Positions 6,390 to 62,978 of a stretch of 64,000 nt of DNA are shown here, one piece after another. Each line of letters opens with the position of its first letter. The first letter of the stretch is position 1. The stretch covers positions 124,001 through 188,000 of IMG/VR virus record IMGVR_UViG_3300028864_000014; one strand, 5' to 3'. The notes beneath the pieces are model-generated. The model did no database searches. It saw only the letters and a program-made list of their open reading frames with translations, and had not been told where the DNA came from. Position numbers and translations under genes: made by a program.

Positions 6390-7145
6390 ATGAACAAAAA
6401 CGCATTTAGAAATTATGCTACTAAGCATTTAGGTATTAATGGAACATTGGTAGATGATGTGACAAAATATCAAGTCAAGAATTTTGGTTTATCTCCTCAT
6501 GTTTTAGAAGAAAGACAACTTAATGTAACCCAATTGTCCGTATTTGATAGACTTATGATGGATAGAATTCTATGGGTGTCTGGTGAAGTGGATGATACAA
6601 TGTCTGATATTATTCAAGCACAATTATTATATTTAGAGGATTCTGATCCTAAAAAAGATATTACAATGCAAATATCAACACCAGGAGGATCAGTTATTCA
6701 TGGGTTAGGTATAATTGATGTTATGGATTATATTAAGCCTGATGTAGCCACAGTTAATTTAGGAATGTGTGCTTCAATGGGTAGCGTTCTTCTATCATCT
6801 GGTGCAAAAGGCAAACGTTCATCTTTAATTAATTCTACTGTTATGTTACATCACGTTGCTGCAGGAAATAGTGGGAAAGTAGATGATACTCGTATTAGTC
6901 AAATGGAGACTGAAAAATATAATTTTTTACTATTCAAAATTCTGGCAAAAAATTCTGGAAAATCATTTGAAGAAATTCATGATTTCTGTCAAAGAGACAT
7001 GTGGCTAAATTCTGATGAAGCATTAAATTATGGTTTGATTGATTCTATTATCGGATTAACTGATAACAAATCAAATTCTATTACAACTATGATGGATGGT
7101 TTTGATGAATATTATATGAAATATGTATTTAAACAAGTAAAATAA
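6390..7145 (+). CDS. clpP: ATP-dependent Clp protease proteolytic subunit
   Basis: VFDRLMMDRIL, ISTPGGSV, GMCASMG (catalytic Ser), VMLHH, RDMWLNSDEALNYGLID; long N-terminal extension. Confidence 0.95.
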   Translation: MNKNAFRNYATKHLGINGTLVDDVTKYQVKNFGLSPHVLEERQLNVTQLSVFDRLMMDRILWVSGEVDDTMSDIIQAQLLYLEDSDPKKDITMQISTPGGSVIHGLGIIDVMDYIKPDVATVNLGMCASMGSVLLSSGAKGKRSSLINSTVMLHHVAAGNSGKVDDTRISQMETEKYNFLLFKILAKNSGKSFEEIHDFCQRDMWLNSDEALNYGLIDSIIGLTDNKSNSITTMMDGFDEYYMKYVFKQVK

Positions 7146-7146: not shown

Positions 7147-7665
7147 ATGACTGGAAAATTAGATAATTATTTAGTTGAAAAATATCCTAAAATTTTCATA
7201 AATCGTTATGGTGATATGAAATCTACTGCAATGTGTTGGGGATTTGAACATGGAGATGGTTGGTTTTGGATATTAGATCAACTATGTTATTCTATTCAAA
7301 GTTATATTGATATGAGTAATGAATATTTATCTGATGATAAGAAAATTCCTCAATTAGTTGCATCACAAATAAAAGAGAAATTTGGAACTCTTAATTTTTA
7401 TTATGATGGAGGAAATTCTGAAATTGATGGAATGGTTAGATTTGCTGAAAATATGTCAGCAGGAGTATGTGAGTTTTGTGGATCAACTGAAAACATTGGA
7501 GGAACAAAAGGATGGATTTCAATTATATGCAAGTCATGTTATGATAATTCATCAGATAATGTCAAAAATAGAGTATGGACAGAACGCAAAAATAATCTTT
7601 CATATAGTAACACAATGAAAGAAGTTAGAAAAATAAAACTTGATAAATTAAATAGAGATTTATAA
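7147..7665 (+). CDS. conserved-looking phage protein with Cys pairs and RKxKL tag
   Basis: GFEHGDGWF, QIKEKFGTLNFY, CEFC...CKSC; ends VRKIKLDKLNRDL. Confidence 0.7.
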   Translation: MTGKLDNYLVEKYPKIFINRYGDMKSTAMCWGFEHGDGWFWILDQLCYSIQSYIDMSNEYLSDDKKIPQLVASQIKEKFGTLNFYYDGGNSEIDGMVRFAENMSAGVCEFCGSTENIGGTKGWISIICKSCYDNSSDNVKNRVWTERKNNLSYSNTMKEVRKIKLDKLNRDL

Positions 7666-7666
7666 T

Positions 7667-7701
7667 AAAAAATAGTTAGATTTATATCTAACTATTTTTT
7701 T
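7667..7701 (+). terminator. intrinsic terminator
   Basis: aaaaatagttaga/tctaactattttt stem plus T-run. Confidence 0.75.
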
Positions 7702-7703
7702 AT

Positions 7704-8671
7704 ATGAAATATTTTACTTATATTTGTATTTCAAGAATTGAAAATATGGAATACAAAGATTTAATAAAAACGATTAAAAAATACGAAGGTTCATATATAG
7801 AGTTTATAATGGATTTAAGTCATAATAATAAATGGTTTTTGATGACGATCAAAGAAGATTTATTTAAAATGAATTATAAAATAATAATTCTGAATAATAT
7901 ATTTAGTTTTTATGAATTACAAAAAATTACAAAAAATATAGAAGAAAAAACAATAATTTTTGTAAATAATAAAATAGATAATAATAATTTTAAAGATCCG
8001 TATAGATATTTCAATGAAAATTGTACTATAATATTTTTATGTGAATATTATAAGCATAAAAATAATAACTCAGTAAATAATATACTTAGTGACTTTAATA
8101 ACATAAGATTAACATATTCATCAGGTTTAATAGTTTCTGTAATATCAGATAAAGTAAAAATCGAAAAATCAAGAATTGAAAGAATTGATTGTGATAGTTA
8201 TTTCTATACATATACTGCAGTAAGAAAATTAAAATTAAAAATAATAAATTATAAAATTGAAAATAATATAATATGAAAGATGTAAAAGAATTTGTAGAAC
8301 AATTAGTCAATATTGATTTAATTGAAAATGAAGATTGTTATGGTCATTATCCATTTCAATTATTTGTAGAAACAAGTGATGGTAAATTCGAAATGAATTC
8401 ATTGGCATTGGGTGGTGATGTTGAATCATGCTACAGTAGAGTAAAGAATTATTTTAAAGATGGCGCAAAGAGAATGTTCATGTCATTAGATTTTCCTGGC
8501 TCTCAAGATATTGAAAATGATTTTGTGTGTATTTACTCAATTGTGGATGGTGATTTTGATGTATATGCAATTCCATATGACACAGAAACTGGAGAAGTAT
8601 ATGAAGAGATTCATAAAAGTGTTTTATTAGATAAAATTCTTGATGATTTCAAAACTCTTTGCTTGAAATAA
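7704..8671 (+). other. two hypothetical ORFs (7704-8276 with RKxKL tag; 8273-8671 acidic)
   Basis: ORF track; ATGA-type overlap. Confidence 0.7.
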
Positions 8672-13791: not shown

Positions 13792-13798
13792 CAATAAT

Positions 13799-13872: not shown

Positions 13873-13880
13873 CAAAAAAT

Positions 13881-13970
13881 GTTCCAGTGGCGAAACTTGG
13901 TTGAGACGCGTTAGATTTAGGATCTAATACAGTTAATGACACACTGCGGGTCCAAATCCCGCCTGGAATA
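13881..13970 (+). tRNA. tRNA-Leu(TAG)
   Basis: Acceptor GTTCCAG/CTGGAAT, TTAGA-TTTAGGA-TCTAA, long variable arm, T-loop TCCAAAT, A73. Confidence 0.92.
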
Positions 13971-13971
13971 C

Positions 13972-26704: not shown

Positions 26705-26733
26705 AAAAATCCTGATTTCTCAGGATTTTTTTT
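26705..26733. terminator. bidirectional terminator
   Basis: aaaaaatcctga/tcaggatttttt. Confidence 0.85.
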
Positions 26734-28241
26734 TATTTATCAATAAATAATTTATTATCAGGAGGCCATTTTATATGTGGTGCTTCTTGAGTATCAGTAA
26801 TCACCCATAATATTTTATCAAAATACTTAGGAATACTAAATTTAAATTTGTCTGGAGCAGTACCCATAGCATCAGTAAAATATATAACAAATGATGGAAC
26901 AGTTCCTTTAGATATTAAATTTTTCTCTATCCATTGAAACGGTGGGATAAAACTTGTACCACCACCACCTTTTGCTTTAAAGTGTTTACCAAGAATTTCT
27001 TTAAATTTACTTTCATTCATTGAATCACCACTCTTTGTTTTAAGATTAATCCTTTCAATTCCTGCCACTGCGTCATCACACCAAATAATTATAGCTTCTT
27101 CTATTTTCTTTGTACCGAAAATACCATAAATTTCAGTTGCAAATCTACCAAGTGTCTCATCACCAATAGAACCTGATGTATCAATACATAATACGACAGT
27201 TCTAAATCCACTATCTTTAGGATATTTTAATCCTGGTAAATACAATGGGTCATCTTGTCCAATAAATCTTTTATTAAAATAACCATATTTAGGATTACTT
27301 GAAAAACATTTATTCATAAATTTAACCAATGCTGATCTCCAATTAACTTTTGGTTTTCCAATTTTATTAAACCATCTATTTAATGATTGTGATCCAGTTC
27401 CTTGATTATTACTTTTTGCATTATTTAATATTTGTCCCCACTTTTTAGCCAAATCCCCTGGATCTTTAATATCTGAAAGTTCATCACTACCTTCAAATAA
27501 CGTTGCACCTTTTTTGTCATCTAAACTACCTGGCGCTCTTAAATCTCCTACTCCTGGAACTGAATTGTCTGGTTGTCCTTGTCCAGGCTGTCCTTGTCCA
27601 GGTTGTCCTTGTCCAGGTTGTCCTTGTCCAGGCTGTCCTTGTCCAGGCTGTCCTTGTCCAGGCTGTCCCTGTCCAGGTTGTCCCTGTCCAGGTTTTCCTG
27701 GTTTTTTTGGTTTTGCATTTTCTTCTTTTTCAAGAACTACATAAATTTGTTCAGCACTCATATCACGATATTTTTCATCCAATAAAATATTAGATGGTAC
27801 TCTCAATATATCAGGCTTACTGGTTGCATTATCTGGTGTTTCTTTACTCATATCAGATATTTGAAGATTAATAGCATAATCAGCAGCTTGATTCCACAAA
27901 TCATGATTTCTATCCCCTTGTCTTATAAAGTGAAGATTCGCATTGTGCATAACTTCGTGTATCAACACAAATGCTACTTCTTCAGTATTTTTTAATACAT
28001 TATTAACAAAATTCGTATTATATAAAATATTTTTACCATCAGTTGCCATAGTGTCTATTCCACTTCCAGGTGCAGCTTCCGCAATATTCAATTGAAAAAA
28101 CAAATCTGCAAAGAAATTATAGTAAGCCATCACAGATGTTAATGCTGCTCTGACTTTACCTTTAGCTAATTTATTTAATTTTGGATCAGTAAAATCTTCA
28201 TTTATACTCAAAAAATTAAATGCATTGAATTTTTTTATCAT
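26733..28241 (-). CDS. DUF2201-type metallopeptidase-like plus vWA domain protein (AAA partner)
   Basis: MATDGKNILYN, FVLIHEVMH (HExxH), LWNQAADYAIN, CIDTSGSI (MIDAS), GGGGTSF, IYFTD. Confidence 0.88.
   Translation of the reverse strand: MIKKFNAFNFLSINEDFTDPKLNKLAKGKVRAALTSVMAYYNFFADLFFQLNIAEAAPGSGIDTMATDGKNILYNTNFVNNVLKNTEEVAFVLIHEVMHNANLHFIRQGDRNHDLWNQAADYAINLQISDMSKETPDNATSKPDILRVPSNILLDEKYRDMSAEQIYVVLEKEENAKPKKPGKPGQGQPGQGQPGQGQPGQGQPGQGQPGQGQPGQGQPGQGQPDNSVPGVGDLRAPGSLDDKKGATLFEGSDELSDIKDPGDLAKKWGQILNNAKSNNQGTGSQSLNRWFNKIGKPKVNWRSALVKFMNKCFSSNPKYGYFNKRFIGQDDPLYLPGLKYPKDSGFRTVVLCIDTSGSIGDETLGRFATEIYGIFGTKKIEEAIIIWCDDAVAGIERINLKTKSGDSMNESKFKEILGKHFKAKGGGGTSFIPPFQWIEKNLISKGTVPSFVIYFTDAMGTAPDKFKFSIPKYFDKILWVITDTQEAPHIKWPPDNKLFIDK
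27571..27690 (-). repeat. coding tandem repeat, 8 x 15 bp (PGQGQ linker)
   Basis: gg(t/c)tgtcc(t/c)tgtcca x8. Confidence 0.95.
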
Positions 28242-28262
28242 TTTAAAATTTTATTTTTTTAA

Positions 28263-29798
28263 TTATTCTCCTGCCATAGTTTTTTGTAGTACTACATGCC
28301 ATCTTTTAGCAAAATCTAACCACACGTCTTGATATTCAGTTTTAATATATGGATGAGCTTTTACAAAATAAGATGCTATTGCAACAATTGCTTCATTTTC
28401 TTTTCCTCTTGTAGCAAATTCATATACATTTTTAACTTCTTCTTTTGAAATATGTTTACCTTGTTTAAATGTGGCAATTGCAATAGAGCAAGCTCTAATT
28501 TGATCTTGTCTAGTTGGCCATTTAACATTTTTAGATCTTTCATTACCATCATATATATCTTGAATATCTTTTTCACTGAAGAATTCCTGTAATTTCATAT
28601 AATTAACAAAATCCATAGCTGCTTCTAATCCTACATATTTAGTATAAATATTTTGAATTTCTGGATATGATAATTTATTAGCCCAATCTTCACTTCTTTC
28701 ATTAAATTCATCTTGTGATGCCATTTCCCATGTTCTTGGAGATGCCCAACCTGGACTTTTAGATTCCTTATCCAATCTATGAAAGTAATTAGGATGATAT
28801 TGTAAATATGAAATAAGAAACGGATTTATATCTTTTCTTGATAATGCATATTTAACCCAATCATCAACAGATGGAGAATAATTAACATGAGCAAAACGAT
28901 TCCATAAAATTGGATCATCAGTCAAATCAGTAGTATCGATATCATCTTTTCTATTACCTGCTGCAATAATAATCCACCTTGGAGGTAAATCATAATCACC
29001 ATGACTACCACTCAATGCCAATGCCAATGATGCACTAAGAACCATTTGTGGTGCTCTATTCATTTCATCAAAAAACATTATACCACCTTTTCCATTTCCA
29101 TCACTTGTAGGAAATATAGCAGGTAATTTAGATACTGTTTTATCATTTTCTATTTTAGGAACACCTCTAAAGTCAGTAGGCTCAATTTGTGATAAATGCC
29201 ATTCTTGAACAACAATATCTAAATCTTTAGCAACTTGATGTAAAATCTCAGTTTTACCAATTCCAGGAGCACCCCAAATAAACAATGCATGAGTTTTTTT
29301 TCTAGCAAATTCTGATCCTTTATCATAATTCTCTTGCTCATGTTTTCCTGCTCTATGTAAATTCATATTATAAACTCTTTTAACCCTTTCTCTAAGCTTC
29401 TCTACATTAACATTTCTCATCACTTCTTCATCACCACTTGGATAATTCAAAGTTACCATTGCTTCATCTACACTATTTCCTTTTTCAATTTTTTCACCTT
29501 TATCATTGAATCTTGAACGTATTTCAGATTCAATTTCTTCTGCTGTTGGAGATTTATCACCTTTTAAATTATTAAGATAATTGTCAGGAATAATTATTTC
29601 AACAACATCTCTAGTTTTTCCATCCTCATCTACATAGGTTGGAATTTCACCTTTATCTTTTAAATATTTTGAATAATACAACCATGCATTTTTACCAAAT
29701 TTGGATTTGAAATAACTATTTAACTTGTTCCACGCATTTGTTAATATATTCTCATTTAATTTATATTCTTCAGAATAACTATCGTATTTCTTTATCAT
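28263..29798 (-). CDS. MoxR/dynein-related AAA+ ATPase with N-terminal extension
   Basis: Walker A WGAPGIGKTE, Walker B MFFDE, AAGNR, sensor SPRTW. Confidence 0.9.
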   Translation of the reverse strand: MIKKYDSYSEEYKLNENILTNAWNKLNSYFKSKFGKNAWLYYSKYLKDKGEIPTYVDEDGKTRDVVEIIIPDNYLNNLKGDKSPTAEEIESEIRSRFNDKGEKIEKGNSVDEAMVTLNYPSGDEEVMRNVNVEKLRERVKRVYNMNLHRAGKHEQENYDKGSEFARKKTHALFIWGAPGIGKTEILHQVAKDLDIVVQEWHLSQIEPTDFRGVPKIENDKTVSKLPAIFPTSDGNGKGGIMFFDEMNRAPQMVLSASLALALSGSHGDYDLPPRWIIIAAGNRKDDIDTTDLTDDPILWNRFAHVNYSPSVDDWVKYALSRKDINPFLISYLQYHPNYFHRLDKESKSPGWASPRTWEMASQDEFNERSEDWANKLSYPEIQNIYTKYVGLEAAMDFVNYMKLQEFFSEKDIQDIYDGNERSKNVKWPTRQDQIRACSIAIATFKQGKHISKEEVKNVYEFATRGKENEAIVAIASYFVKAHPYIKTEYQDVWLDFAKRWHVVLQKTMAGE

Positions 29799-29818
29799 TT
29801 TATTATATTTTTATTTTT

Positions 29819-31255
29819 TTATAACATATCGTTTTCACGAGCATCTCCTCTTTTTGATTTACCTTCTGGATTTTTCTTTCTTTCTTCCTCACGTTCTTTT
29901 TCATCTAATTTTTTAAGAAAATTTACAAATGCAACTGCACTAGCGTATCCAACAAAATCTTCATATATATCTTTTACTTCTTCATATGATAATCTATTTT
30001 TCCAATCAAATCCTCTTTCAAAATAATCTTCTTCTGATGCCATTTCCCAAGTTCTTGGTGATGTCCAATTAGGAGCTTGATCAACAGTTTTTAATCTGTG
30101 ATAATATTCTGGATTTTCTTTAATAAATTGTATAAGTTTAGGATTAATTGATTTTATGTTTTTTGCATATCCAATCCAATCTGAAGGTTTTGGAGAAAAA
30201 TTGATATGTTGAAATCTATTCCATAAAATTTTATCTTCTGTTAAATCACCTGAACTCAAATCAGAACCTCTATTACCTGCTGCAATAACTATCCAATGTG
30301 GAGGTAATTCATAACTACCATGTTTACCACTTAATGCTAATGACAATGAAGCATCAAGAACCATTTGTGGTGCTCTATTCATTTCGTCAAAAAACATAAT
30401 ACCACCTTTTCCATTTTTTCCATCACTTGTAGGAAATATTGTTGGTAACTTCCAAACTGTTCTTTCATCTTTTGGATCATCAGTTCCCATTACATTTTCA
30501 ATTCTAGGAATACCTCTAAAGTCAGTTGGTTCAATTTGTGATAGATGCCATTCAATTACCGCAATTTCTAGTTCTCTCGCAACTTGATGCAAAATTTCAG
30601 TTTTACCAATTCCAGGAGCACCCCAAATAAATATTGCATTAGTCTTTCTTCTTACATATTCTGTTCCTTTATCACCTTCTGCTTGATGTCTTCCTGCCCT
30701 AAGTGAATTCATATTATAAAGTTTAATTACTTCATGTTTTAATTCAGCAACATCTTCATTACGTACAGTTGGATCTGGATGATCTAATCCAACAAAATCT
30801 TCATTATCATCAAGAACTCCTTCATTTAAATATAAATTTTTTAAGCTTTCTTTGACTTTTTCCAATTCTTCAATTTCATCATTAACTACTTTTTCCTCTT
30901 CATCATTATTTCCAGGAGTTTCATCAGATCCTTTAAGTCCAGGAATTTCTTCTGTTTTCTCATCTTCTACTGTTTCTAATTCTGTTTCTACTCCTGACTC
31001 TTCAATTTCTTTATCAGAAGGTAAATCTGATGTACTCGCATACGCTGTTGGACATATAAATTCTATGCCTCTTGGTAATTTTCCCTTTTTCTGTAAATAC
31101 AAAGCATAATATACCCAAGCATGTTTCCCAAAATGTTGTTTGAAGAATCCAACAACCTTGTTTAAAATATCAGAAAATACATTTTCATTTATTTTTACAC
31201 TTTCATTTTCTCTATATTCTTTAGAAAAATGATCATAATTTTTTAATGTTTTCAT
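29819..31255 (-). CDS. second MoxR/dynein-related AAA+ ATPase, tandem paralogue
   Basis: Same Walker A/B, AAGNR and SPRTWEMAS; shorter C-terminal lobe. Confidence 0.9.
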   Translation of the reverse strand: MKTLKNYDHFSKEYRENESVKINENVFSDILNKVVGFFKQHFGKHAWVYYALYLQKKGKLPRGIEFICPTAYASTSDLPSDKEIEESGVETELETVEDEKTEEIPGLKGSDETPGNNDEEEKVVNDEIEELEKVKESLKNLYLNEGVLDDNEDFVGLDHPDPTVRNEDVAELKHEVIKLYNMNSLRAGRHQAEGDKGTEYVRRKTNAIFIWGAPGIGKTEILHQVARELEIAVIEWHLSQIEPTDFRGIPRIENVMGTDDPKDERTVWKLPTIFPTSDGKNGKGGIMFFDEMNRAPQMVLDASLSLALSGKHGSYELPPHWIVIAAGNRGSDLSSGDLTEDKILWNRFQHINFSPKPSDWIGYAKNIKSINPKLIQFIKENPEYYHRLKTVDQAPNWTSPRTWEMASEEDYFERGFDWKNRLSYEEVKDIYEDFVGYASAVAFVNFLKKLDEKEREEERKKNPEGKSKRGDARENDML

Positions 31256-43346: not shown

Positions 43347-45213
43347 ATGGGGATTAAAAAATTAATAAAAGGAATATTTAAATTAAAAAAAACTTCAAAT
43401 AATACTGAAGTTGATGTTGAATTAGAAAATGAAGTCAAAGTTGATGTTGAAAATTCTGATGAATCAGAAGAAGAGAGTATTCTAGATGATTTTTCAATTT
43501 TACTTACAGGTGAAATATTAAAGAGTGAGGAACCTTATAAATCTCCTGAAAGTAATATTACTGAATCTGATAATTTAGCATATCAATATTATCTATTAGA
43601 TTATAAAGATATGTACAGGTGGCATGATAAGTGTCCTGCATCTCAACTTTATATTATGGATCATTATTATGGACAGAAATTTAATTCATATCATGAACAC
43701 GATGTAATAGATGATTATTATGAGAGAGCAATTAAAAATTTAAGAAAACAAAAATTAGATAAATTAGATGACAATTGATGAAATTGCTTATGGTATATTC
43801 ATAGAAGAATTTAATACATTAAAATTGTATGAATATCTTACTCCTCCTTCTAAGTCTGAATTTATAGCTGGAAAAAATCATGAGACTTCTTTTTATAAAA
43901 CAGCAAAAAATATTTTAAGAAAACAAAAATTAGAAAAACTTAATATTTTATGAAAATTGATTATACTATTGATATTGATGATATTAGTGATATTGACAAT
44001 TCTGCTTATGAATTGTATATAGAAGAATGCTGTGACAAAGAACAAATTAAAAAATTTTACATAAGTTCATCTTTTATATCTATTGAATTTTTTATATATT
44101 ATAAAGGTAGTTTTAGTGAATATTATGATAAAGCAAAAAATCATTTAAGAAAAAATAAATTAGAAAAACTTAACATTTTATGACAATAAATAATAGTGAG
44201 ATTGATAATTTAGCATATGAAATATATGAAAAAGAATATTATGAAAAGTATGAAAAAGGCGCATCAGTTTTCACTAAAAATTTTTTTATATTTCACAAAG
44301 ATTGTTTTCCTGAATATTACAATAATGTAGAAAAACATCTAAGAAAAAAGAAATTAGAAAACCTTAATATATTATGATAATTAATAATATTAGTGATATT
44401 GATAATTTAGCATATACAGAATATGAAAATTATCAATATGATACATATGGAGAGTATGTTTATATTTTAAATAAATCATATTTTATAAATAATAAAGAAA
44501 CTTTTTATGAGTATTATTATAAGTTAGAAAAATATATAAGAAAACTAAAATTAGAAAAATTAATAAATGTTCAAAATTAAGAAAAAAATTGAAAATATAG
44601 ATGACATTGCATATAAGTATTATATTTCTGATATTAAGCTTTCTTTTGGCAATGATACTGTGTATCTATGCTTTAATTCTTTCCTTATTGATAGTGTACT
44701 TGAAGAAAACTACGAAAAATATTACGAAAAATATTATATAAAAGCTATCTCAATTATTAGAAAAAGAAAAATTATAAAATTAAATGAAATTTACTAAAGA
44801 TATAGGAAAATGGTCTGATTATTCTACTATATTAGATGATATAGTTTATCAATTATATTTAAATGAAATGGAAGATGATGAATCAAGAAAAAATCCTACA
44901 GATCAAAAAATTCTTATTAATATTCATTCTAAATATAAAATTGATAAAATAACTAGAGCATATAAGATAGCTTTAAATATACTAAGAAAAGAAAAAATTG
45001 AAGAAATAAACAATGCAAGAAGTTGGAAATAAATACACCGAAATAGAAAATACTGCATATGAATTATTTTTAAATAATGAAAAATATTTAAGTATAAAAT
45101 TATTTGTTGTTTGTCATGATGTATTTGATATTTATAATGAATATTATAAAAAAGCTAACGATAGATTACGAAATAAAAAATTAAAAAAATTAAAAGATTA
45201 TGAAAATAAATAG
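43347..45213 (+). other. tandem array of 8 small D-x-[LI]-A-Y...YYxKA..LRKxKL paralogues
   Basis: ORFs starting 43347, 43768, 43950, 44180, 44374, 44567, 44784, 45013. Confidence 0.88.
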
Positions 45214-45976
45214 AGAACAATATGATGAAATATGTGAAGATGATGGTAATTTTTACATTGATGATTTTCCAATTAGTTCAAACCAAGATATTATGTTTGA
45301 ATTATTTACAAATCTACCTTCTCATGAAAAATCATTAGCAATTGAATGGGGATTCAATGATACTGTCTTCAGAGATAATGTTTTTGTTATATTATGCAAA
45401 TCTCAATTAGGAATGACATGTAAAGAATATTATAGCAGTAAAGAATTTAAAAATTATATGGATAATGGAGAATTAATAGAATTAGACTTTAATAAAATAA
45501 AATAAAATAAAATAAAATAAAATAATGGTAGGCTTAGATAATCAAGATGAAATAATTGAAAATGAAAAAAGGATATCTGATTTCATGAAAGTTGAAAATG
45601 TGTTTTCATATATTAATAGAGATGGTTTTTTAGGAATGTATATTGCAGAAGATAATGAAGGTTCAATAGATTATACTCATTCTGGTATAAATTGGTTAAA
45701 TTATAAATCTTGGAAAAATATAATGCCTGTTGTTGAAAATATTGAAAGTGTATTTGAAACTGAAAAAAATAAAGAATCAGTTGATATAACATCAAGACAC
45801 GTTATATATTCACATTATAATGACCACTATGAATGTGAATTTAGAATAATTGTAGGCTGCTTTTTAGAATCACCAGAAAAAATAAAAGTAGAATCAAAAT
45901 TAGAAGCTGTTTATATGGTTGTGACTGAATTTATTAAGTGGTATTCAAAAGCATATAATACTATCGATTTGAATAA

Positions 45977-46693
45977 TTAATATATTGTTACTCCAATTAC
46001 AAAATATAATTTTTGCGATATAGTATTTAAATATAAAACTTCATAAACAGGTATCTTATAATTGTTTGTGATTTTTATTGATTTATTTACTTTCATTCCA
46101 ATATTCATAAATCCAGTCTTATACCCAAACATACCCTGTTTCGGTGTCATTCCAGCAAATGTATTTATTGTATAATCATTTATATTAGTTGAGTATGCAA
46201 CTTCTAAATAAGTAGAATAATAATTTGAATTATTAGAATTTTTATCATTACCATAAAAATAACTTTCTACTGTAAATGACAATGGAACTTTATCACTTAT
46301 AGTGTAATTCAATATGACTTCTATTTGGTGAGTAGTTGAATTTGTATTATAATTTAAAATATTAATATTAGATGATGTTTCCTTACCATCACTACTTATT
46401 GGATTGTAATTATCACTCAATGATATCGATAATTTTTTTATTGTATATTTAACTGATAAATCTATTTCTTCATAATTATTACTAATACCATATGTAGAAA
46501 ACGCGCTAATTTGAAATGATTTATTTATATTATAATTTATTGTTGGTTCTATGTGAGCACTATTTCCGCCAGAATTATTTCCTCTGTAAATATATCTACT
46601 TACAACATCAGTTGTTATGTTAATTTGTGAATATGAAATATTAACAATAAATATTGAAAATATTAAAATTGTAATTAGTTTTTGGAATCTCAT
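45977..46693 (-). CDS. outer-membrane beta-barrel-like protein with signal peptide
   Basis: Hydrophobic signal, DVVSRYIYRG, alternating beta-strand pattern, terminal YFVIGVTIY. Confidence 0.65.
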   Translation of the reverse strand: MRFQKLITILIFSIFIVNISYSQINITTDVVSRYIYRGNNSGGNSAHIEPTINYNINKSFQISAFSTYGISNNYEEIDLSVKYTIKKLSISLSDNYNPISSDGKETSSNINILNYNTNSTTHQIEVILNYTISDKVPLSFTVESYFYGNDKNSNNSNYYSTYLEVAYSTNINDYTINTFAGMTPKQGMFGYKTGFMNIGMKVNKSIKITNNYKIPVYEVLYLNTISQKLYFVIGVTIY

Positions 46694-46745
46694 TTTATTT
46701 TTATATATTTATTCTGAAATATTTTTTTATTTCAAATATTATTAT

Positions 46746-46753
46746 TATCTTTG
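46746..46753 (+). promoter_or_regulatory. Bacteroidota -7 element
   Basis: TATCTTTG upstream of 46784. Confidence 0.6.
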
Positions 46754-48136
46754 TATATAAATACTTATTAAAACAAATACTATATGAGAAAAGTTGATTG
46801 GAATAAATTTATATTCATTTCTAAAGGTGAATGGTTTACAAAAGGAACTGAAGTTAAGTGTGTTGAAACTTATTGCGAAATTAAAATTAACGACACGGTT
46901 ATGAACACAGTAGGATTATTTAAGGGTGATTCTATTGTTGATGGAGAATCAGATGCTTGTCCTTTTTATGAGTTTGATATCTATTATAATGGAGTTATTG
47001 TAAATGAACTTAGTTATCTTGAACTTTTTGATATTATGAAAAGTGTAGATTAATATAAATCTTTAAAAAAATAAAAATGCTAATATTTTATATTCTATTG
47101 TTCATTTCAATCTTGTTGTTTTGTATTCCATTCTTCATTGAAGATACTTGGTATTTGACTTTATTTAGTATAATATTATTGATATTTAATTTGACAATTG
47201 GATTAGGTGCTATTAGATCTAGTAGCAATCCTGAAGTTAAAAAATATAACGAATTACTTGAGTTGTATAATTACACAACATCTCATGATTCTATTCCATT
47301 TAAAATGAAAACAGATTTATATGATGACTGTTCAGAATTTAATAGAATATTATCTGATTATGATGAATATCATAATAGTAATTGGGTAGGAGTGTATTAT
47401 CCTGAAATTGGAAATAAAAGAAACAAAATGAAAACTTTTGATATAAGTAAAATAAAATAAGATGATAGAATTAGAAAAATATGAAAGTTCTCTAAGAGAG
47501 TGCTTATTAAATGAAACAGGATTACCTTTTAATCAATGGATTCATGAAACCCGTTCTGAATTAGCTCAAGACTCAATTGATAAAGTTAATAGATTTAATA
47601 ATGAAATTGAATTACACAAAAACGAATTAGTTATTGACTTATCTAAAGTTGTTAGACTTGTTGATGTTGTTGATGGAGTAGAAGATTATTATTGGGTATA
47701 TGATGAGTGGGTAGGCATGATGAATAGTAAAATATATGAAGCATCATGTGTAGGTCATCACACGTATTTAAAAGGATTTTTACCTGATGATAAATATAAT
47801 GAATTAGTTAGAGTTTGGAATTTAAACCAGTCAGAAAAAGCAGTTTAATATTTTTTATAATCAATTTAAATAACTATTTGTATGGATAAATATATTGCAT
47901 TAGAAATTCCAGAAAAAGATAATAGTGGACACCGTATTGCTTGGTGGGTACCTGATATGTGCTTAAAAGTAATTGAAATATTAGAAACAGAAAATCCAGA
48001 TTATGAATTTTTTCAAATTGTAACTACAGGTAATATTTCATGCAGTAGCAAATTTGCATTGATGAAAATTAAAGATGAAAAAAAAATTAAAAATAAAGAA
48101 GTTCAGTTAATTGAAACTGTAAAAAAATAAATAAAT

Positions 48137-48568
48137 ATGATAGACTTATTATGCCTAATAAAAAAGGCAATGCTCGCAAGAAATACATTTGAATTAGGTG
48201 TATTAAGATTGATGAAAACTGAAATAGTTAATTTTGAAAATTCAGTAAATGCTACTAAACTAACAGATTCAGATGAAACAAAAATTATCATAAAAATGAT
48301 AAAACAACGTAAAGATTCAGTTGAAAAATATAATGAAGCAAATCGTAATGATTTAGCTATTAAAGAGCAAGAAGAAATTAATTTTTTGAGTAAATTTTTA
48401 CCAAAAGAATCATCAAAAGAAGATATTTTAGCATATGTAATTGAAGTTATTTCTAAGGGAGGTGGCAATATGGGCTCTTATATAAAAGAAGTCAAATTGA
48501 AATATCCTACATCTGACGGTAAATTTGTATCAGAAGAAGTTAAGAAAAATATGATAAAAAATTTATAA
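48137..48568 (+). CDS. GatB/YqeY domain protein
   Basis: LGVLRLMKTEI, IKMIKQRKDS.EKY.EANRNDLA.KE.EEI..LSKFLP, MGSYIK. Confidence 0.9.
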   Translation: MIDLLCLIKKAMLARNTFELGVLRLMKTEIVNFENSVNATKLTDSDETKIIIKMIKQRKDSVEKYNEANRNDLAIKEQEEINFLSKFLPKESSKEDILAYVIEVISKGGGNMGSYIKEVKLKYPTSDGKFVSEEVKKNMIKNL

Positions 48569-48599
48569 TATATAAGTCGAAAATAATGACTTATATAAA

Positions 48600-48794
48600 A
48601 TGGATTTAGAAAAAAAAGGAATGATTTTAAATCAAAATGAAAAATTAGTAATCTTAATAAGAACCAATTTAGAAAGAAATTTTGGATATTGTACATTTTC
48701 TCAACCTGATGTTTCATTACATGATACAATATGTCCTTGTAAAAATTTTAGATTATATGATAAGTGCTATTGTAATCTTTATGTAAAAAAATAG
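48600..48794 (+). CDS. ferredoxin-thioredoxin reductase catalytic-subunit-like Fe-S protein
   Basis: GYCT...ICPC...CYCNLY. Confidence 0.65.
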   Translation: MDLEKKGMILNQNEKLVILIRTNLERNFGYCTFSQPDVSLHDTICPCKNFRLYDKCYCNLYVKK

Positions 48795-48818
48795 AAAGTA
48801 ATTTAATTACTTTCTTTT

Positions 48819-48852
48819 TTTGTGTATAATTAAATAAATAGCGTTATCTTTG
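48819..48852 (+). promoter_or_regulatory. terminator-adjacent Bacteroidota promoter
   Basis: agaaagtaa/ttactttct hairpin upstream, TTTG, TATCTTTG (48845-48852). Confidence 0.6.
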
Positions 48853-49129
48853 TATTTATAATAATTATAAATTTATATGATATGGAAGCAATTTATAATA
48901 CAAGCGATTATATTGAAATGATATTTATGTTTGTGATGATGGTATTATTACTTATTGTTATTAAATATATACATGGAGACTATTCAGCAGAATCAATTGA
49001 AGAAATTAGTAAAGATGAATTATCAATCACAAATGATAAAGGTGATGTAATAGGAAAAAAGTATATCAATACATATAAATACACATATAAAAATGGTAGT
49101 ATTAAATATAAAACAAAAACTATTAATTT

Positions 49130-49844
49130 ATGATAACATCTCTAACCAATCTAACTAAATTGGATAATATTGCATATGAATTATATACTGATAATTATAT
49201 TTCTAAAACATATGATCCTTTATCATTATTTTCGTTTCATTATATTTATTATAAGAAATGTAGTTGGGGAGGAACATCTTATGACGATGTTAAAAAAATT
49301 TATGATAACGCAAAAATTACAATAAGAAAATTAAAATTAATTGAAATAGAAAATATTAAATTATGATAACATCAAATAAATTAGACGATATTGCATATAA
49401 ATTATATATGAATAGAATTGATTTTGATTGCGTATATAATTCAATGAGTAAAAATGAATTTAAAAATATTCTTTATGATAAAAAATTTGACATTGATTAT
49501 TATAACAGAGAAAGAACTGTTATAAAAAGTTTTTATTATAAAGCTAATATTATTTTAAGAAAAGAAAAACTTATAGAAATATCAAAAAATATAAAATGAT
49601 ATATCTTGATGATGTTATACATTATGTCAAACATAATAAAGTTCGTTTAGATATTGTATCTGATTATAAACATATTTATGATTATGATTTTCACATAGAA
49701 GAAAATACTGAAGTTTCAGTGTATTTACATTTAAATAAAAAACAATACGGCGGTGAAGTTTGTTATATTAAAATTATTAAAATTAAATTATCAGATATAA
49801 TATCTCAAATAAGAAAAGAAAAACTCAAAAAAATAAAATCATGA
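49130..49844 (+). other. three RKxKL-tagged ORFs, two of them D-x-I-A-Y family members
   Basis: DNIAYELY...IRKLKL; DDIAYKLY...LRKEKL; ...IRKEKL. Confidence 0.8.
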
Positions 49845-50248
49845 CAATCTTTAAAGGAATAAAAATAAAAATATCAGAAACCACAAGTTATCCAACTCCT
49901 TATGGATATGAGTATAACGCAAAGGGTTGTTATGTAAATAAAAAATTCTTAATTGTTGTTGGACATTTAGAACAAGACAACACAATAAGAATTAAATATC
50001 CAATGAAAGATATTATAAATATAGAAATTATATAGTAATCATGAAAACAAATAAGCAAAACACAGAAACCGTAAATGGTTTATCATTTAGACATGCTGCA
50101 CAAATTGTCAGACGTAAAATGATGACTAAGACTTATACCGAAAAAAATGAATACAACAGGAAAGATAAATCTTGGAAAAATTTACTTTAATAAATTGTAA
50201 AAAAAGTTAAATAGCTGATTTATTTATATATAAATCAGCTATTTTTAT

Positions 50249-50256
50249 TACCTTTG
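50249..50256 (+). promoter_or_regulatory. Bacteroidota -7 element after a terminator hairpin
   Basis: aatagctgattta/taaatcagctatt stem, then TACCTTTG. Confidence 0.6.
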
Positions 50257-51551
50257 CACTTGATAATTAAACATTCAAATATTATGGAAGATAACAAAAT
50301 TTACTGTCCTGTTTGTGGTTCTGAGTTAAAAGTTACTCATCGTGATAATTATGAAGATATTCAAGATCATGTATCATGTGATGGCGGAACTCCATCTCTA
50401 AAAGATGGTTATCAATGTGTAAATAAAAAATGTTTAGCATCTGAATATGGTTTGACTTGGATTCAAGATGGTGATTTATATACTAACAGAGATTTTTTTC
50501 CACCTGATGTTACTTATTCAATGGTTAATTCAAGAATAAAAGAATTGTGCGAAAATGGTAATACATTTGCAAAAAATTCATGGAATTACTATTACAAAAA
50601 AGGCTGTGATGCTGTAAAAAAGAGAACTATTATAATTAATATTTTTAAATATAAAATTGATATTATTCCAAAAAGATATGGATATAAATATCCAAATAAT
50701 AAACGTGAAATGCCAAGATTAATTGGTTGGAAATTTGAATTTTGGAAGAAAACTGGAGATTATAGCTATAGTTGTATTGTTCCAATACACACAATGGTAA
50801 AGCACGATATCAGTACTTTTAAAAATGCAATAAAAAGATTAAAGAAAAGTGAAAACCCACTTAATATGAAATCTGATATTGATGAAGTTATAAATAAAAT
50901 TAAAGGTAATAATCATTGGGGACAACCAGATGAAAGAAATTATGCTAAGATATCATCGTTTATTATAAACATTTTTTATAAGAAAGAAATTAATTTTATT
51001 TTAAATTTAAAATAAACTTCATTGTTATATTTTATATATAAATCTAAACAAATAAAATATACATGACAAAATTTGAAAAAAGATTAGACACGTCTTTAAC
51101 TATATTGAACTCATATGTGTCATCAGGTAAAATATCAATAAATTCAACGAATGAGGTTATTGATGATTATGTAGTATTTTCAGTTAAACTTGCTGATAGA
51201 CTTATTAATGAATTGACAATATTGAATCCATATAAAGAACCTGTGATAATTAATGATAAATTTGATTATTATGATTTAGGAAATATAGAAGTTGATAGAA
51301 TAATGGAGCTACCTTATGTTAATTCAGTGGTTATAAATTTAAAAGAAGAAATATTAAAACCAAATCTTAACATCAAAGAAAAATTTAAAGAAGACTATTA
51401 TAGTCATTTAAATGCTCTATTTTTGAATGTTCTTCTTAATAGATTGAATAGTTATCCAAATTATGAAAGTGCTGAAAATAGAGCATTAGACGCAAGAAAA
51501 GCTACTTCTGATATTATACAAGATATTAGAGCGAAAATACAAAATAACTAA
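50254..51551 (+). other. two hypothetical ORFs (50254 or 50284 to 51015 with N-terminal CPVC; 51063-51551)
   Basis: ORF track. Confidence 0.7.
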
Positions 51552-51568
51552 TTTAAATATTATTCTTA

Positions 51569-52351
51569 ATGATAAAAAAATTTGATAAATTTAATGATAA
51601 TTCATATTTAGATTATTTTACATATCTATATGAACTTGCTCCAAAAGAATTGAAAGATTTAATTGATGCAACAAAAGGAGTTAATCAAAGTGAATTGTGG
51701 CACAGTGAAGGTGACGCATACACTCATATCAGATTAGTTGTTAATCGCTTACATGATAAGTATCATGATATAAATTTAGATTTAGCAGGATTATATCATG
51801 ATTTAGGAAAAGCTAGTACTACTGAGTGGAGTGAGGAAAAAAATTCGTGGATTTCACCTGGACATGAATATGTTTCTTGTGAAATGTTAGATGATCAATC
51901 AAATTTTGTTAAAGAAATGGGAGGAGATTATAAATTAATTTATTATATAGTTGAGAATCATATGAAAATTAAATATTTAGATAACTTTAGAATACAAAAT
52001 AAAATTGATATTCTAAATCATAAATATTTTAATGACTTGATGAAATTTGACACAGCAGATTTTGGCGGAACAGACTTGAATTGTAAGTCTGTTCGAGATT
52101 TGTCTAATATCAGAATAGAAATAAAAGAATATGATGAAATTGAACTTGAGAATAAAGAAATTTCTAAAAAGTTCAATGGAAATATAATAATGAATAACTA
52201 TCCAGAATTAAAAGGTAAAGAGTTAGGAAACAAAATGACAAAATTTAAAGAATATATTTCAAATAAATTTAATACTAATCTTAGAATTTTTATTTTAAAA
52301 AATCATTCTAGCGATATTATGAATGAATTTGATATATTTATGAAAAATTAA
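51569..52351 (+). CDS. HD-domain phosphohydrolase resembling the HD/tail part of CCA-adding enzymes, lacking the nucleotidyltransferase head
   Basis: WHSEGDAYTH, AGLYHDLGK, PGHE, HM, D..G; C-terminal LKGKELG. Confidence 0.75.
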   Translation: MIKKFDKFNDNSYLDYFTYLYELAPKELKDLIDATKGVNQSELWHSEGDAYTHIRLVVNRLHDKYHDINLDLAGLYHDLGKASTTEWSEEKNSWISPGHEYVSCEMLDDQSNFVKEMGGDYKLIYYIVENHMKIKYLDNFRIQNKIDILNHKYFNDLMKFDTADFGGTDLNCKSVRDLSNIRIEIKEYDEIELENKEISKKFNGNIIMNNYPELKGKELGNKMTKFKEYISNKFNTNLRIFILKNHSSDIMNEFDIFMKN

Positions 52352-52396
52352 AATTGAATATTTAACTATAAAACAAACCAAATGATTGTATAATCA

Positions 52397-52428
52397 TTTG
52401 GTTTTTTCATTTATTTTTCATATATTTG
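52397..52428 (+). promoter_or_regulatory. Bacteroidota promoter whose -33 lies in a terminator arm
   Basis: aaccaaatgatt/aatcatttggtt; TTTG, 20 nt, TATATTTG. Confidence 0.7.
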
Positions 52429-52610
52429 TATAAATATAAAATATAAATGGAGTCACATATAATTATACCAATAAGAGAAATTAAAGATAGAATGGCTCAA
52501 ATAGAAAGTCAGATAGAGGTATTTAAACCCGATAGTGTATATTCATATGCATTATCTAAAATGCACTCATTATTGACAGAATTATTAGATACATCAAAAA
52601 AAATTGATTT

Positions 52611-54759
<2,149 letters not shown>

Positions 54760-54776
<17 letters not shown>

Positions 54777-55363
54777 ATATTTGCCTGATTATTGGAGTAA
54801 TGGTAATAATAAAGCGACTGAAGTATATGAAATAATAAAAAATTCTTCAAATGAAGAAATAGTAGAAGTTTTGAATATGTTTGATATTAAAGATATAGAG
54901 AAATTTTTAAGAAATAAAAAATTAAAAAAATTAAAATGAGAGAAATATCAAGAGTTTCTATGTCAGAATCAGAATTATATTCAACTATATCAAGAGCCAT
55001 TAATTATGACATTGTTGGAGAAATACCAATTAGAATTGATAATCTTATTAAATATGCATCAAAAGAAGATATAAATGATTCTTTAGAAAAATTTGAAATT
55101 AAAGATATTGAGAAATTTTTAAGAACTAAGAAATTGAAAAATTTAAATAAATAATTATGTCATTTATGTCATTTGGAATTACAAATTCAATTAGAGATTC
55201 AATTAGAGATTATCTGAATGTTCATGAAGTCTCAGATAAAATTGGAGTACTTATTGAAAATTTATCAAAAGAAGAAATTAATAATTCTTTAGATAAATTT
55301 GATATTAAGGACATTGAAAAATATTTAAGAAACAAGAAGTTAAATAAATTATTAAATGACTAA
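54760..55363 (+). other. three paralogues ending F[DE]IKDIEK[FY]LRxKKL (54760-54939 missing from the ORF track, 54936-55154, 55157-55363)
   Basis: Shared about 20-aa C-terminal block. Confidence 0.85.
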
Positions 55364-56629
55364 TTATAAAGGATATAAAGGTTATGGAAATTATGACTAT
55401 ACTATAGGAGTATGGAATTTAGAAGATAATGATTTATATAATATATCATATCAGCTATATTTATTTTCTGACGGAAATGAGAATTATGTGAATATATCTT
55501 ATGATCAAAATATATTTATTAACATGATTGAAATTGGTGATCCTTATTGTAATAAATTTTTAAAAATCGCAAAATCATTAATAAGAAAAGAAAAATTAAA
55601 TATTATAAATAACTTAATATGACAATTCAATTAGAATATGATATTGATAAAATTGCATATGGATTATATTTGATATATTGTAAAAAAAACCAAAATTGGG
55701 GTCCAACATTTATATTTGAGGATTATGTATATATCAAATCACAGATGAAAAATTATACTTCTGAATATGATAAAAAAATAATAGTCGATAACTATAATAA
55801 AGCTAATATAATTTTAAGAAAAATGAAATTAGAAAAATTAGAAAATGATAATAGATAAGACAAAAGGTAATTGGTGCAAAGAAGGTGAATCTGATTATAT
55901 AGATGACATAGCTTTTCAATTATATCTAAATTATTATTATAAAGAATATGGAGATTTTAATGATGATTCTCCTCAGAATAATTTTAAAACAGTAAGATAT
56001 ACTCATAATAGCCCGTGGTATTCATTTTATATTAAATCATTTAAAAATTTAAGAATTGAAAAATTAAAAAAATTAGAAAATGTTAATAGATAAAACAATA
56101 GGATATTGGTGTCAAAACAATGAGTCTGATTGTGTAGATGATATTGCTTTTCAATTATATCTAAATTGTCATTTTGATATATATGGTTCAGTCTCTACTT
56201 CTGACCAAAATGACTTTATGTGTTTAAGATATTATCATTCTATTTACTATTTATCTGGTTTTTATGAAAAAGCATTTAAAATTTCAAAAAATTTAATAAG
56301 AAAAGAAAAATTGAAAAAGTTGAAATATGAAATCAGTGCATGAAATTGAATATTCAAATATTCACATAGATAAATCAATAGGAAGATGGTCTAAAGATAT
56401 TCTTTATTCTGAACTTGAAGATGTGTTTTATCAGATATACGTTCATTGGTATTATAATGAATATATTATTGAAAATGATTCTGAAAATCCTTTATTGTCT
56501 CAAACATATTTCATGTCTTATATGAATACTATTAAAGAAACTAAGAATCACCATTCTTATGATGATTATTATAATAAAGCAACTCACATATTACGAAAAA
56601 TAAAATTAGAAAAATTGAAAAATGAATAG
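55356..56629 (+). other. tandem array of 5 D-x-I-A-[YF] family paralogues
   Basis: Starts 55356, 55619, 55845, 56080, 56327. Confidence 0.85.
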
Positions 56630-57503
56630 TGATTTTAAAATAGGAGATAAGGTATTTTTATGTGATGCAAGAAATTGTTTTACTGCAGAGTTGAATAAAC
56701 AATATACTATCATTAGCATAAAATATGATGATTATAACAAATATACAAAAATAGCATTTAATGAAAATATATCTGAATCAGAAGAATTGTGTTATTTGGA
56801 TTCCAGAAGATTTAAAAAAGATATAAAATATGAAAGAAAAATAAAATTAAAAGAAATATTAAATAATGATTAATAAATTTAAATCAGGAGATAAAGTTAT
56901 ATGTATAGATAATACAAATGCTTTTGAATTAATACCTTATATAAAATCATACACAATATCTCATATAAAAACTATTTTTATTTTTTTAGTTGATGAAGAA
57001 TCCAAATTTCCTTATGTTTATACTAGATTTGAATTCGATATTAAAACAATGAGAAAGGATAAATTGAAAAAAATACCTAATCATGAAAATTGAAAAAATT
57101 AAATGTAATTTAAAAATAGGAGAACAAATTGTTATAATTAAAGATACTATTGGTAATTCGGAATTAAAAATGAATAAAATTTACATAGTTGAATATATTC
57201 ATGAATATGTTAATCATATTAAGTTAGTAGGATTTGAAGAACGTATATATCAAAGTAAATTATTTAGCAATGATATTAGATTAATAAGAAAAATTAAAAT
57301 AGAAGAATTAAATGAACAATGATATTGAGAATTACGATATGTTAGTTGAATATTTTAATCAAAAATTAAGTTTAGCGTCTGGTATTCCAAAAAAATATTT
57401 ATATCCAGATCCACTTGATTCAATTGATTTTGATGTCATATTAAAATATTTAAGAAAAAAGAAATTAGAATACATAAAAAATAACAATTTAAATAATGAT
57501 TAA
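56622..57503 (+). other. three K-[IS]-G-[DE] (SH3/KOW-like) paralogues plus one further RKxKL ORF
   Basis: FKIGDKV.LCD, FKSGDKVICID, LKIGEQI. Confidence 0.7.
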
Positions 57504-62066: not shown

Positions 62067-62978
62067 ATGAATATTCAAAGTTTAAGTATTGTAGTACCAA
62101 CGAATAACAAGTGTGTAAATCATTGTCAATTTTGTGTGAGTAGAACTCACACCAATCCGTATGTTGATAAGATAAATTATGTTGTCAATGAGTACATTGA
62201 AGGAAGTGACATCATTGAAAATTCAATTGAATATAAAGATTATTTCAATCGTTTACAGTTTGCCAGAGACAATGGATGTAATGTTGTAGTTCTTACTGGA
62301 ACAGGTGAGCCAGTTCAAAATAGAGATTTCTTAGACTTTTTTTCAGAGATGAATTCTAAACTTCATACTCCTTTTAAAAGTATAGAAGTTCAAACAACTG
62401 GTGTTCTATTGACAGATGAATATCTTGGACATTTGAGAGAAATTGGAATTACAACTATTTCCTTTTCAATCTCTAATATTTTTGATAATGATAAAAATTT
62501 GAAAATTATAGGTTGTAATGAAAAATTAAAATTTGATGTTTTTGATACTATTAAATTAGTTAAAAATCATGACTTCAATTTGAGATTATCATTAAATATG
62601 GTTAATGATTATGATGAACACACAGTAGATGAGGTTCTATTGAGATGTAAAGAACTTGGTGCAGATCAAATAACTTTCAGAAAATTGTACAAATCTGAAT
62701 TAAATAATGGTATTGATAAATGGATAGAAAATAATGCAAGTAAGATTTTTTATGATAGATTGATTTCATATATGAATGTATATGAAAATCGTAACGCTAA
62801 TAAATTTTTAGGCACTCTTCCTTTTGGTCCTAAAATTTATGATGTTAATGATATGTCTGTTTCTATTGATTCTGATTGTATGAATTTAATGAAAAAAGAT
62901 ACATACAAATATCTCATTTTAAGAGAGAATGCAAAACTGTATTTTCTTTGGAATACACCATCCAGTTTGATATTTTGA
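62067..62978 (+). CDS. radical SAM enzyme
   Basis: CVNHCQFC (CxxxCxxC), LTGTGEP, EVQTTG. Confidence 0.9.
   Translation: MNIQSLSIVVPTNNKCVNHCQFCVSRTHTNPYVDKINYVVNEYIEGSDIIENSIEYKDYFNRLQFARDNGCNVVVLTGTGEPVQNRDFLDFFSEMNSKLHTPFKSIEVQTTGVLLTDEYLGHLREIGITTISFSISNIFDNDKNLKIIGCNEKLKFDVFDTIKLVKNHDFNLRLSLNMVNDYDEHTVDEVLLRCKELGADQITFRKLYKSELNNGIDKWIENNASKIFYDRLISYMNVYENRNANKFLGTLPFGPKIYDVNDMSVSIDSDCMNLMKKDTYKYLILRENAKLYFLWNTPSSLIF

Follow-up and report, generated by a model that had tools for sequence, protein, structure and literature searches.

A recurrent C-terminal helix motif on unrelated small proteins of a megaphage fragment, and its coding DNA as a joint for gene shuffling

We analyzed a window of 64,000 nucleotides, bases 124001-188000 of a 235,318-bp IMG/VR virus record (IMGVR_UViG_3300028864_000014, hereafter the contig), in which three arrays of small genes (A, B and C) encode 15 members of a mini-protein family with a predicted three-helix fold. 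Analysis of these genes and of their relatives revealed that the motif at their C-terminal helix, R-[KN]-x-K-[LI]-x-x-[LIVM] (hereafter the tag, as opposed to the head that precedes it), is carried by about one-sixth of the contig's genes on unrelated folds and recurs in another megaphage lineage, and that the DNA encoding it is a joint at which genes are shuffled between strains. The spread of the tag goes beyond the first-pass annotation of the window, which had described the arrays as a family in their own right, and the occurrence of the tag on unrelated folds and in another megaphage lineage changes what needs to be explained.

The motif was found 81 times in the ORFs (open reading frames) of the contig, and 63 of these occurrences lie within the last 22 residues, where 0.275 were expected from shuffling residues within ORFs (maximum 2 in 200 shuffles). 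Of the 63 tagged ORFs, 35 are in the window. The RKxKL ending is not a trait of the mini-protein family, which is how it was originally described. By a greedy gene count, the tag is borne by 61 of 395 genes on the contig (~15%), by 35 of 143 genes in the window, and by 56 of the 251 contig genes of no more than 150 aa (22%). Its carriers range from 45 to 239 aa and include several tandem families along with many singletons. At least two unrelated folds are represented among them, namely the three-helix fold and an SH3-like beta-barrel, whose model consists of five strands and, at the C-terminus, a helix formed by the tag (predicted local distance difference test, pLDDT, 81.8), with weak structural matches to KOW, Tudor and SH3 domains. 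When the SH3-like and three-helix families were compared with hhalign, only the last 24 columns aligned. The SH3-like tagged family is found in the window (Table 1) and also at contig 190-192 kb.

Other phage sequences carry the same ending. A 16-kb contig with 27% G+C (L025) encodes at least 12 members of the three-helix family together with further tag-bearing ORFs, and 20 kb of a 669-kb scaffold encodes at least 16 family members and at least 28 tag ORFs. In the distant 642-kb uncultured phage LR756502.1, 28 ORFs carry a C-terminal tag, compared with 0.85 expected by shuffling, although a profile search of this genome detected no member of the three-helix family. The tag of LR756502.1 is mostly of the form R-N-x-K-L-x-x-[LI]-G-I and stands at the very end of the protein (for example, in 3416-4588 and 623121-636090), so that the consensus differs by lineage across many unrelated genes, R-K on the contig and R-N in LR756502.1. 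A shallow search of the literature found no account of a proteome-wide tag in phages. In addition, seven tandem genes for proteins of ~100 aa in the 669-kb relative (L065:17903-19930) form another mini-protein family, whose conserved C-terminus is not the tag but P-[SN]-Y-x-[PR]-K-x-F-[IV]-Y; because this family has an ending of its own, family-specific or shared C-terminal motifs may be a recurring theme in these phages.

The 15 ORFs of the mini-protein family lie where the first-pass annotation had placed them, eight at 43347-45213 (array A), two at 49130-49599 (array B) and five at 55356-56629 (array C), and they align in the frame that it had proposed. Their homology was assessed by a leave-one-out approach, in which the tails were trimmed and a hidden Markov model (HMM) built from 14 heads was used to search 871 ORFs for the fifteenth; these tail-less profiles recovered 15 of 15 members, with E values from 2e-12 to 7e-3. 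Pairwise BLAST of the heads was too insensitive for clustering such short proteins. Four further members on the contig were detected by a head-only HMM at E 1e-9 to 3e-6; the next-best ORF scored E 0.09, a gap which indicates that the family is discrete, with 19 members on the contig. The scaffold-plus-variable-region family is thus genuine, with two amendments to its earlier description. The N-terminal G-x-W extension exists, but on five members (starting at 44784, 55356, 55845, 56080 and 56327) rather than four, and the middle part does hold variable stretches, but a conserved Q-x-x-F lies inside it. Among relatives, P0037 and P0123 are orthologues of the first gene of array A with the same N-terminal extension, and P0028 is a tandem-fused two-unit relative of the sixth.

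A search of 1.84 billion representative proteins (clusters at 50% identity) found 361 clusters that match the family profile at E<=1e-3, 53 of them at E<=1e-10. The matching clusters are all metagenomic and none is named; nearly all are 60-100 aa long and matched over their full length. The consensus of 146 representatives has near-invariant elements in the order M-x-I-D-K-x-x-G-x-W, L-D-D-I-A-Y-x-L-Y, Q-x-x-F, Y-Y-x-x-A and I-L-R-K-E-K-I-x-K-I, and the variable parts are the two stretches that flank the central Q-x-x-F. The long form, with the N-terminal G-x-W, is the norm in this world-wide family. The 15 ORFs are real genes of a large, unannotated family in a clade of AT-rich megaphages.

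Structure prediction, which the first-pass annotation had suggested for the family, was carried out for one member (array C no. 3, 55845..56093). From a 26-sequence alignment, AlphaFold2 gave a confident three-helix fold (mean pLDDT 93.4; predicted template modelling score, pTM, 0.82), with an ordered N-terminal strand and helices at residues 18-35, 44-52 and 57-80. The order of the fold is an optional strand (I-D-K-x-x-G-x-W), helix 1 (L-D-D-I-A-Y-x-L-Y), a variable stretch, the short helix 2 (Q-x-x-F), another variable stretch and the long helix 3 (Y-Y-x-x-A ... L-R-K-x-K-L-x-K-L), whose final two turns form the tag. Foldseek comparisons of this model with PDB and BFVD produced no row below E 1, and VIA-align against 48,161 chains gave no convincing relative (best Z 5.0). 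Similarly, for the three-helix family, the ESM Atlas held no usable match and a profile search of PDB sequences returned nothing below E 0.5. Scans of the members and of the other tag-bearing proteins against Pfam, PHROGs and NCBIfam yielded nothing consistent between members (best E no better than 0.003), and no family member turned up when 50,697 deposited phage genomes were searched with tblastn. None of the tools that were run gave a functional link for the family members.

Several lines of evidence show that the tag is maintained as a peptide. The nucleotide logo of 61 tags is codon-periodic, and its Leu/Ile codons (TTA, TTG, CTT, CTA, ATA and ATT) have an invariant T at position 2 with positions 1 and 3 free; the codons of the x positions are free as well. 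In 14 aligned pairs with an ~80%-identical relative, mostly orthologues, the R, the K at +3 and both Leu/Ile positions are kept, with only Leu/Ile/Met swaps; position +1 is slightly more variable (K, N, T or C), the remaining positions differ, and Leu codons are exchanged synonymously. The codon periodicity, the free x codons and the synonymous Leu changes in orthologues all point to selection on the peptide, and selection on the tag thus acts on the protein and not on the DNA. In the consensus, Arg(0) and Lys(+3) are almost never interchanged (conserved in 141/146 and 145/146 representatives, respectively), and helix geometry predicts that the R, the two K and the two Leu/Ile share one face. 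Such a lack of Arg/Lys exchange on a single face suggests a specific partner rather than generic charge, and the lineage-wide shift between R-K and R-N suggests a receptor of the tag that evolves together with the phage and may be encoded by it.

The tag-coding DNA is also where the arrays are rearranged. The gene ends that had been noticed as near-identical blocks ending in the next ATG agree at 36/39, 34/39 and 34/39 positions pairwise, against a mean of 20/39 over all member pairs. Array content was compared among the window and four other assemblies (L023, L028, L017 and L030). L023 is the same genome (99.99% identity). L028, at 95.8% identity, likewise has eight array-A members, but in the third gene the body has been swapped for an unrelated member; in windows of 50 nt, the cassette matches at 21-31/50 positions and the flanks at 45-50/50. 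The breakpoints fall in the tail block of the previous gene and in the gene's own tail block (blocks 1 and 2 in Table 1), and the incoming cassette resembles P0130, a family member known from elsewhere. This swap bears out the proposal that the conserved gene ends are recombination points. The more distant assemblies revealed gain and loss by unit lengths. Array B has one gene in the syntenic, ~80% identical L017 and two in the window, through a clean whole-gene indel, and array C has two genes in L017 and five in the window. In L030, which is ~75-80% identical, array A is reduced from eight members to ~2.5, namely two members and a 51-aa chimera (L030:3011-3166) in which the head of an array-A member is fused to the final residues of a homologue of the gene after the array (window 45200-45505); the chimera is the scar left where a deletion took out most of array A. 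The strain comparison also suggests a route by which unrelated heads may come to share one tag, since a head that recombines upstream of a resident tag block would inherit the tag.

Among described mechanisms, the closest to this shuffling is that of the PeSL cassettes of T4-type phages, in whose hyperplastic regions short conserved sequences, intergenic promoter and stem-loop elements, flank small variable ORFs of unknown function (PMC2839356, PMC4122927). In both systems, the conserved element is the site of insertion, deletion and replacement between close relatives, as in the L028 swap and the indel at 49363-49599. However, whereas PeSLs are intergenic and regulatory, the blocks described here are coding, lie at the 3' end of the gene and encode a C-terminal helix that is selected as protein. 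Moreover, no terminator-like hairpins were found inside the arrays, and sigma-70-type promoter matches there were below the shuffled expectation; matches to the Bacteroidota-type promoter were marginally enriched (10 vs 5.8 expected). A bidirectional terminator-like hairpin at window 52375-52428 is directly followed by a match to the Bacteroidota-type promoter (TTTG ... TAnnTTTG), and the two may mark the start of the transcription unit that holds array C. A diversity-generating retroelement was considered as another source of variation and rejected, as the contig, itself a genome fragment, has no RVT_1 match and no template/variable repeat pair; direct repeats among family members are at most 84% identical, with no near-identical pair.

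The tag-bearing genes evolve faster than the genes around them. For reciprocal-best pairs between the window and L017, the median ratio of nonsynonymous to synonymous substitution rates (dN/dS) was 0.505 for tag-bearing genes (n=12) and 0.205 for their neighbours (n=28), a difference of ~2.5x (Mann-Whitney p 6e-5), and the median amino-acid identities were 57% and 78.5%, respectively. The whole-gene dN/dS of the tag-bearing genes was below 1 in all cases, which indicates that they are constrained and hence real.

On balance, we regard it as moderately probable that these proteins are variable binder heads on a common docking tag, shuffled at the tag-coding DNA. The tag would then be a helix that docks its carriers on, or addresses them to, one specific receptor, probably encoded by the phage, a role suggested by its Arg, Lys, Leu and Ile on one face, by the rarity of Arg/Lys interchange and by a consensus that shifts in concert between lineages. 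The heads would be fast-evolving binder modules from tightly coupled blocks of small genes, and the tag-coding DNA supplies the homology for duplication, deletion and replacement of array units, so that recombination at the tag would give a new head the tag at once. Host-takeover or counter-defence would be the likeliest class of head targets. A comparable design is seen in the ankyrin/PRANC (F-box-like) families of poxviruses, where variable binder heads carry a conserved C-terminal docking motif for the hub Skp1. Both are multigene arrays with strain-variable copy number and a conserved C-terminal motif, but the poxvirus families belong to viruses of eukaryotes and have another fold, whereas here one tag sits on several unrelated head folds.

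Several points weigh against the docking-tag account. The analyses that were run identified no receptor for the tag. In the three-helix family, the tag lies within a confidently packed helix, so that its Leu/Ile may be structural instead of forming a binding face. With dN/dS below 1, the faster evolution may reflect relaxed constraint instead of an arms race. Finally, the tag could be the inherited helix of a very old superfamily, the heads of which have diverged beyond recognition, and not a module at all.

The first-pass annotation had read the arrays as a library of decoys or inhibitors directed against variable host defence proteins and expanded by unequal crossover, which we keep as a tentative alternative. 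Copy-number variation, cassette replacement and raised dN/dS form the pattern of an arms race, these small proteins are rich in aromatic residues (F/W/Y make up 18% of the heads), and their genes stand in co-directional small-gene blocks. However, the searches that were run gave no likeness to a known anti-defence protein or to any other family, dN/dS stays below 1, and the same dynamics would suit any accessory genes for host takeover or superinfection exclusion; an anti-defence library also leaves the tag on unrelated folds unexplained.

The contig carries a complete Clp protease, ClpP and a ClpA/C-type unfoldase, and both genes are also present in LR756502.1. The unfoldase (844 aa; contig 94277-96811, L012:6278-8812, outside the window) has a Clp N-domain and two AAA modules, with an I-G-F ClpP-docking loop at residue 692. 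It is conceivable, though in our judgment unlikely, that the tag couples its carriers to this ClpC-like/ClpP system, either as a degron that times the clearance of early proteins or as a tether through which the heads would act as substrate adaptors. Clp systems are known to recognize short basic-hydrophobic peptides at C-termini, as in the degrons of the MuA type, and the C-terminal peptide of SspB tethers that adaptor to ClpX. The tag resembles them in being short, basic-hydrophobic and C-terminal, in a phage that encodes a true ClpP along with an unfoldase bearing the docking loop; two tag-bearing genes directly follow clpP, and LR756502.1, which uses the tag, has both Clp genes. On the other hand, the co-occurrence comes from two related phages only, and the tag is helical and lies 9-20 residues from the C-terminus instead of standing at it. 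One complex prediction, of the N-domain of the unfoldase (residues 1-165) with one tag-bearing protein, reached 0.10 where the mark is 0.32; the tool returned no verdict on it, and it counts neither way.

A similarly low probability is given to the tag as a cargo-loading or encapsulation peptide, which would direct many small proteins either to the capsid, for injection along with the DNA, or to some other compartment built by the phage. Encapsulin cargo-loading peptides, encapsulation peptides of bacterial microcompartments and the coat-binding C-terminal helices of P22 scaffolding protein are all terminal amphipathic helices that address one shell, and a short amphipathic C-terminal helix common to otherwise unrelated small proteins (63 carriers) has the same format; the very large capsids of ~700-kb phages could hold many proteins. 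The tag has no sequence resemblance to these peptides, and its carriers are far more numerous (~60 on a third of a genome). We know of no precedent for one loading peptide with 60 or more different cargo species, and no capsid protein was identified on the 235-kb fragment.

We think it improbable that the heads are small nucleic-acid-binding modules, HMG-box-like three-helix domains and KOW/Tudor-like barrels, with the basic tag as a shared DNA- or RNA-contacting helix. HMG boxes are among the best structural rows of VIA-align (Z 4.2, 3.7 and 3.4), but a Z of 5 or less is within reach of chance for helical models according to the tool's own note. The predicted topology, two shorter helices and then a long third one, against which the extended N-terminal segment packs, resembles that of an HMG box, the SH3-like family resembles KOW, Tudor and SH3 barrels, and the tail has a median charge of +3. 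Sequence similarity to HMG boxes is lacking, however; the heads are slightly acidic on average (median charge -2), and strict discrimination between Arg and Lys would be unusual for generic backbone contacts.

That the conserved gene end acts solely as a DNA or RNA signal (for translational coupling, a promoter or recombination), with a functionless peptide, is very improbable and largely refuted. In its favour, the blocks end in the ATG of the next gene, most junctions overlap and the blocks are recombination breakpoints. Against it, the logo is codon-periodic with free third positions and free first positions of Leu/Ile, orthologues show synonymous Leu swaps and conservative replacements only, the distance from tag to stop varies from 9 to 20 codons, some tag genes precede terminator-like hairpins and not another gene, and the motif is retained at the amino-acid level in a phage whose GC content differs.

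Table 1. Array members, tail-coding blocks, other tag-bearing genes and the phage ClpP gene. Positions are those of the window unless contig coordinates are indicated; LOO, leave-one-out.
Feature	Position	Strand	Remarks
Array A no. 1	43347..43778	+	143 aa; long acidic N-terminal extension, then three-helix core; LOO E 1.9e-5
Array A no. 2	43768..43953	+	61-aa short form without N-terminal strand; LOO E 1.9e-4
Array A no. 3	43950..44183	+	77 aa; LOO E 4e-8; body ~43955-44150 is the cassette replaced in L028
Array A no. 4	44180..44377	+	65 aa; LOO E 6e-8
Array A no. 5	44374..44580	+	68 aa; LOO E 1.9e-5
Array A no. 6	44567..44797	+	76 aa; LOO E 7e-5
Array A no. 7	44784..45032	+	82 aa; long form with N-terminal G-x-W; LOO E 4e-7
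Array A no. 8	45013..45213	+	66 aa; tail variant R-N-K-K-L; LOO E 9e-4
Array B no. 1	49130..49366	+	78 aa; orthologue in L017; dN/dS 0.45
Array B no. 2	49363..49599	+	78 aa; missing from L017 (whole-gene indel)
Array C no. 1	55356..55622	+	88 aa, long form; LOO E 2.4e-3; no aligning counterpart in L017
Array C no. 2	55619..55858	+	79 aa; dN/dS 0.60; LOO E 7e-3
Array C no. 3	55845..56093	+	82 aa; member used for folding; relatives P0002-P0005
Array C no. 4	56080..56343	+	87 aa; LOO E 2e-12; missing from L017
Array C no. 5	56327..56629	+	100 aa; LOO E 2.7e-5; missing from L017
Further family members	contig 44842-45042; 104284-104508; 118618-118881; 192207-192455		found by head-only HMM
Tail-coding block 1	43915..43953	+	ends in next ATG; 36/39 and 34/39 to sister blocks; left breakpoint of L028 swap
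Tail-coding block 2	44145..44183	+	right breakpoint of L028 swap
Tail-coding block 3	44339..44377	+	third near-identical block
SH3-like family member with tag	54531..54776	+	alignment A4; five strands and C-terminal tag helix
Three tandem SH3-like genes with tag	56622-56873, 56866-57093, 57083-57322	+	
Three tandem genes, third (helical) head family	54760..55363	+	ending F-D-I-K-D-I-E-K-[FY]-L-R-[NT]-K-K-L; repeat families D3 and D4; directly before array C
Tag-bearing gene with different head	49596..49844	+	82 aa; directly after array B
Two larger tag-bearing genes	7147..8276	+	172 and 190 aa; directly downstream of phage clpP; no family match
Phage ClpP, candidate partner system of the tag	6390..7145	+	PF00574 E 3.7e-55; NCBIfam ClpP E 3e-74

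The contig (from fen/bog samples; 24% G+C; completeness 33% by CheckV) derives from a tailed phage of the myovirus type, as it encodes a 1200-aa tail sheath and several tail-fibre-like proteins. Its genes are densely packed, with frequent overlaps and mostly one direction, and include those for a ribonucleotide reductase, an SbcCD-like fusion and an NAD-dependent ligase. One family member was traced to at least 13 contigs; contigs that carry one family member reach up to 711 kb, others stand on the 669-kb scaffold, and ~47 proteins of the contig are held in common with LR756502.1, which together indicate that the contig is a fragment of a megaphage. Its host is likely a member of the Bacteroidota, as suggested by a match to a sorting domain of the type IX secretion system (T9SS) in a gene of a relative, by the phage ClpP, which is nearest to the NCBIfam ClpP model PRK14514, and by the apparent Bacteroidota-style signal peptide, judged by eye, of a porin-like gene. 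This porin-like gene (238 aa; 45977-46693) is on the minus strand, opposite to the small-gene block around it, has a weak match to TorF-family porins and is kept in the relatives L028 and L030.

Other features of the window were also recorded. Among the small genes, an HD-domain protein (51569-52351) weakly matches part of a CCA-adding/repair enzyme, and the gene at 48137-48568 has an orthologue in L017 that matches the YqeY family. Five tRNA-Leu genes stand in tandem at 13519-13971, with the four anticodons taa (twice), aag, caa and tag. Two MoxR-like AAA ATPases are encoded beside a DUF2201 metallopeptidase/VWA protein on the minus strand (26733-31255), and a radical SAM enzyme of 303 aa (62067-62978), with weak matches of the MoaA/SPASM type, is kept in L017.

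Going beyond the docking-tag account, it is possible, if rather doubtful, that R-[KN]-x-K-[LI]-x-x-[LI] serves as a proteome-wide megaphage address code, which would route 15-25% of the small proteins to one receptor (ClpC/ClpP, the capsid interior or another phage-built compartment), with its coding DNA as the recombination joint. If so, these phages would possess a phage-encoded system of protein sorting or timed turnover that is coupled to built-in gene shuffling. The hundreds of small genes in megaphages of 0.6-0.7 Mb are wholly uncharacterized, and the tag offers a simple handle on them, as a single receptor, once found, would link dozens of proteins in each genome to the same pathway. 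In addition, the three-helix scaffold represents a natural, highly diversified family of mini-binders (361 clusters) that would be directly screenable, and the use of tag DNA as a cassette breakpoint provides a concrete mechanism by which libraries of small binders may be built and renewed.

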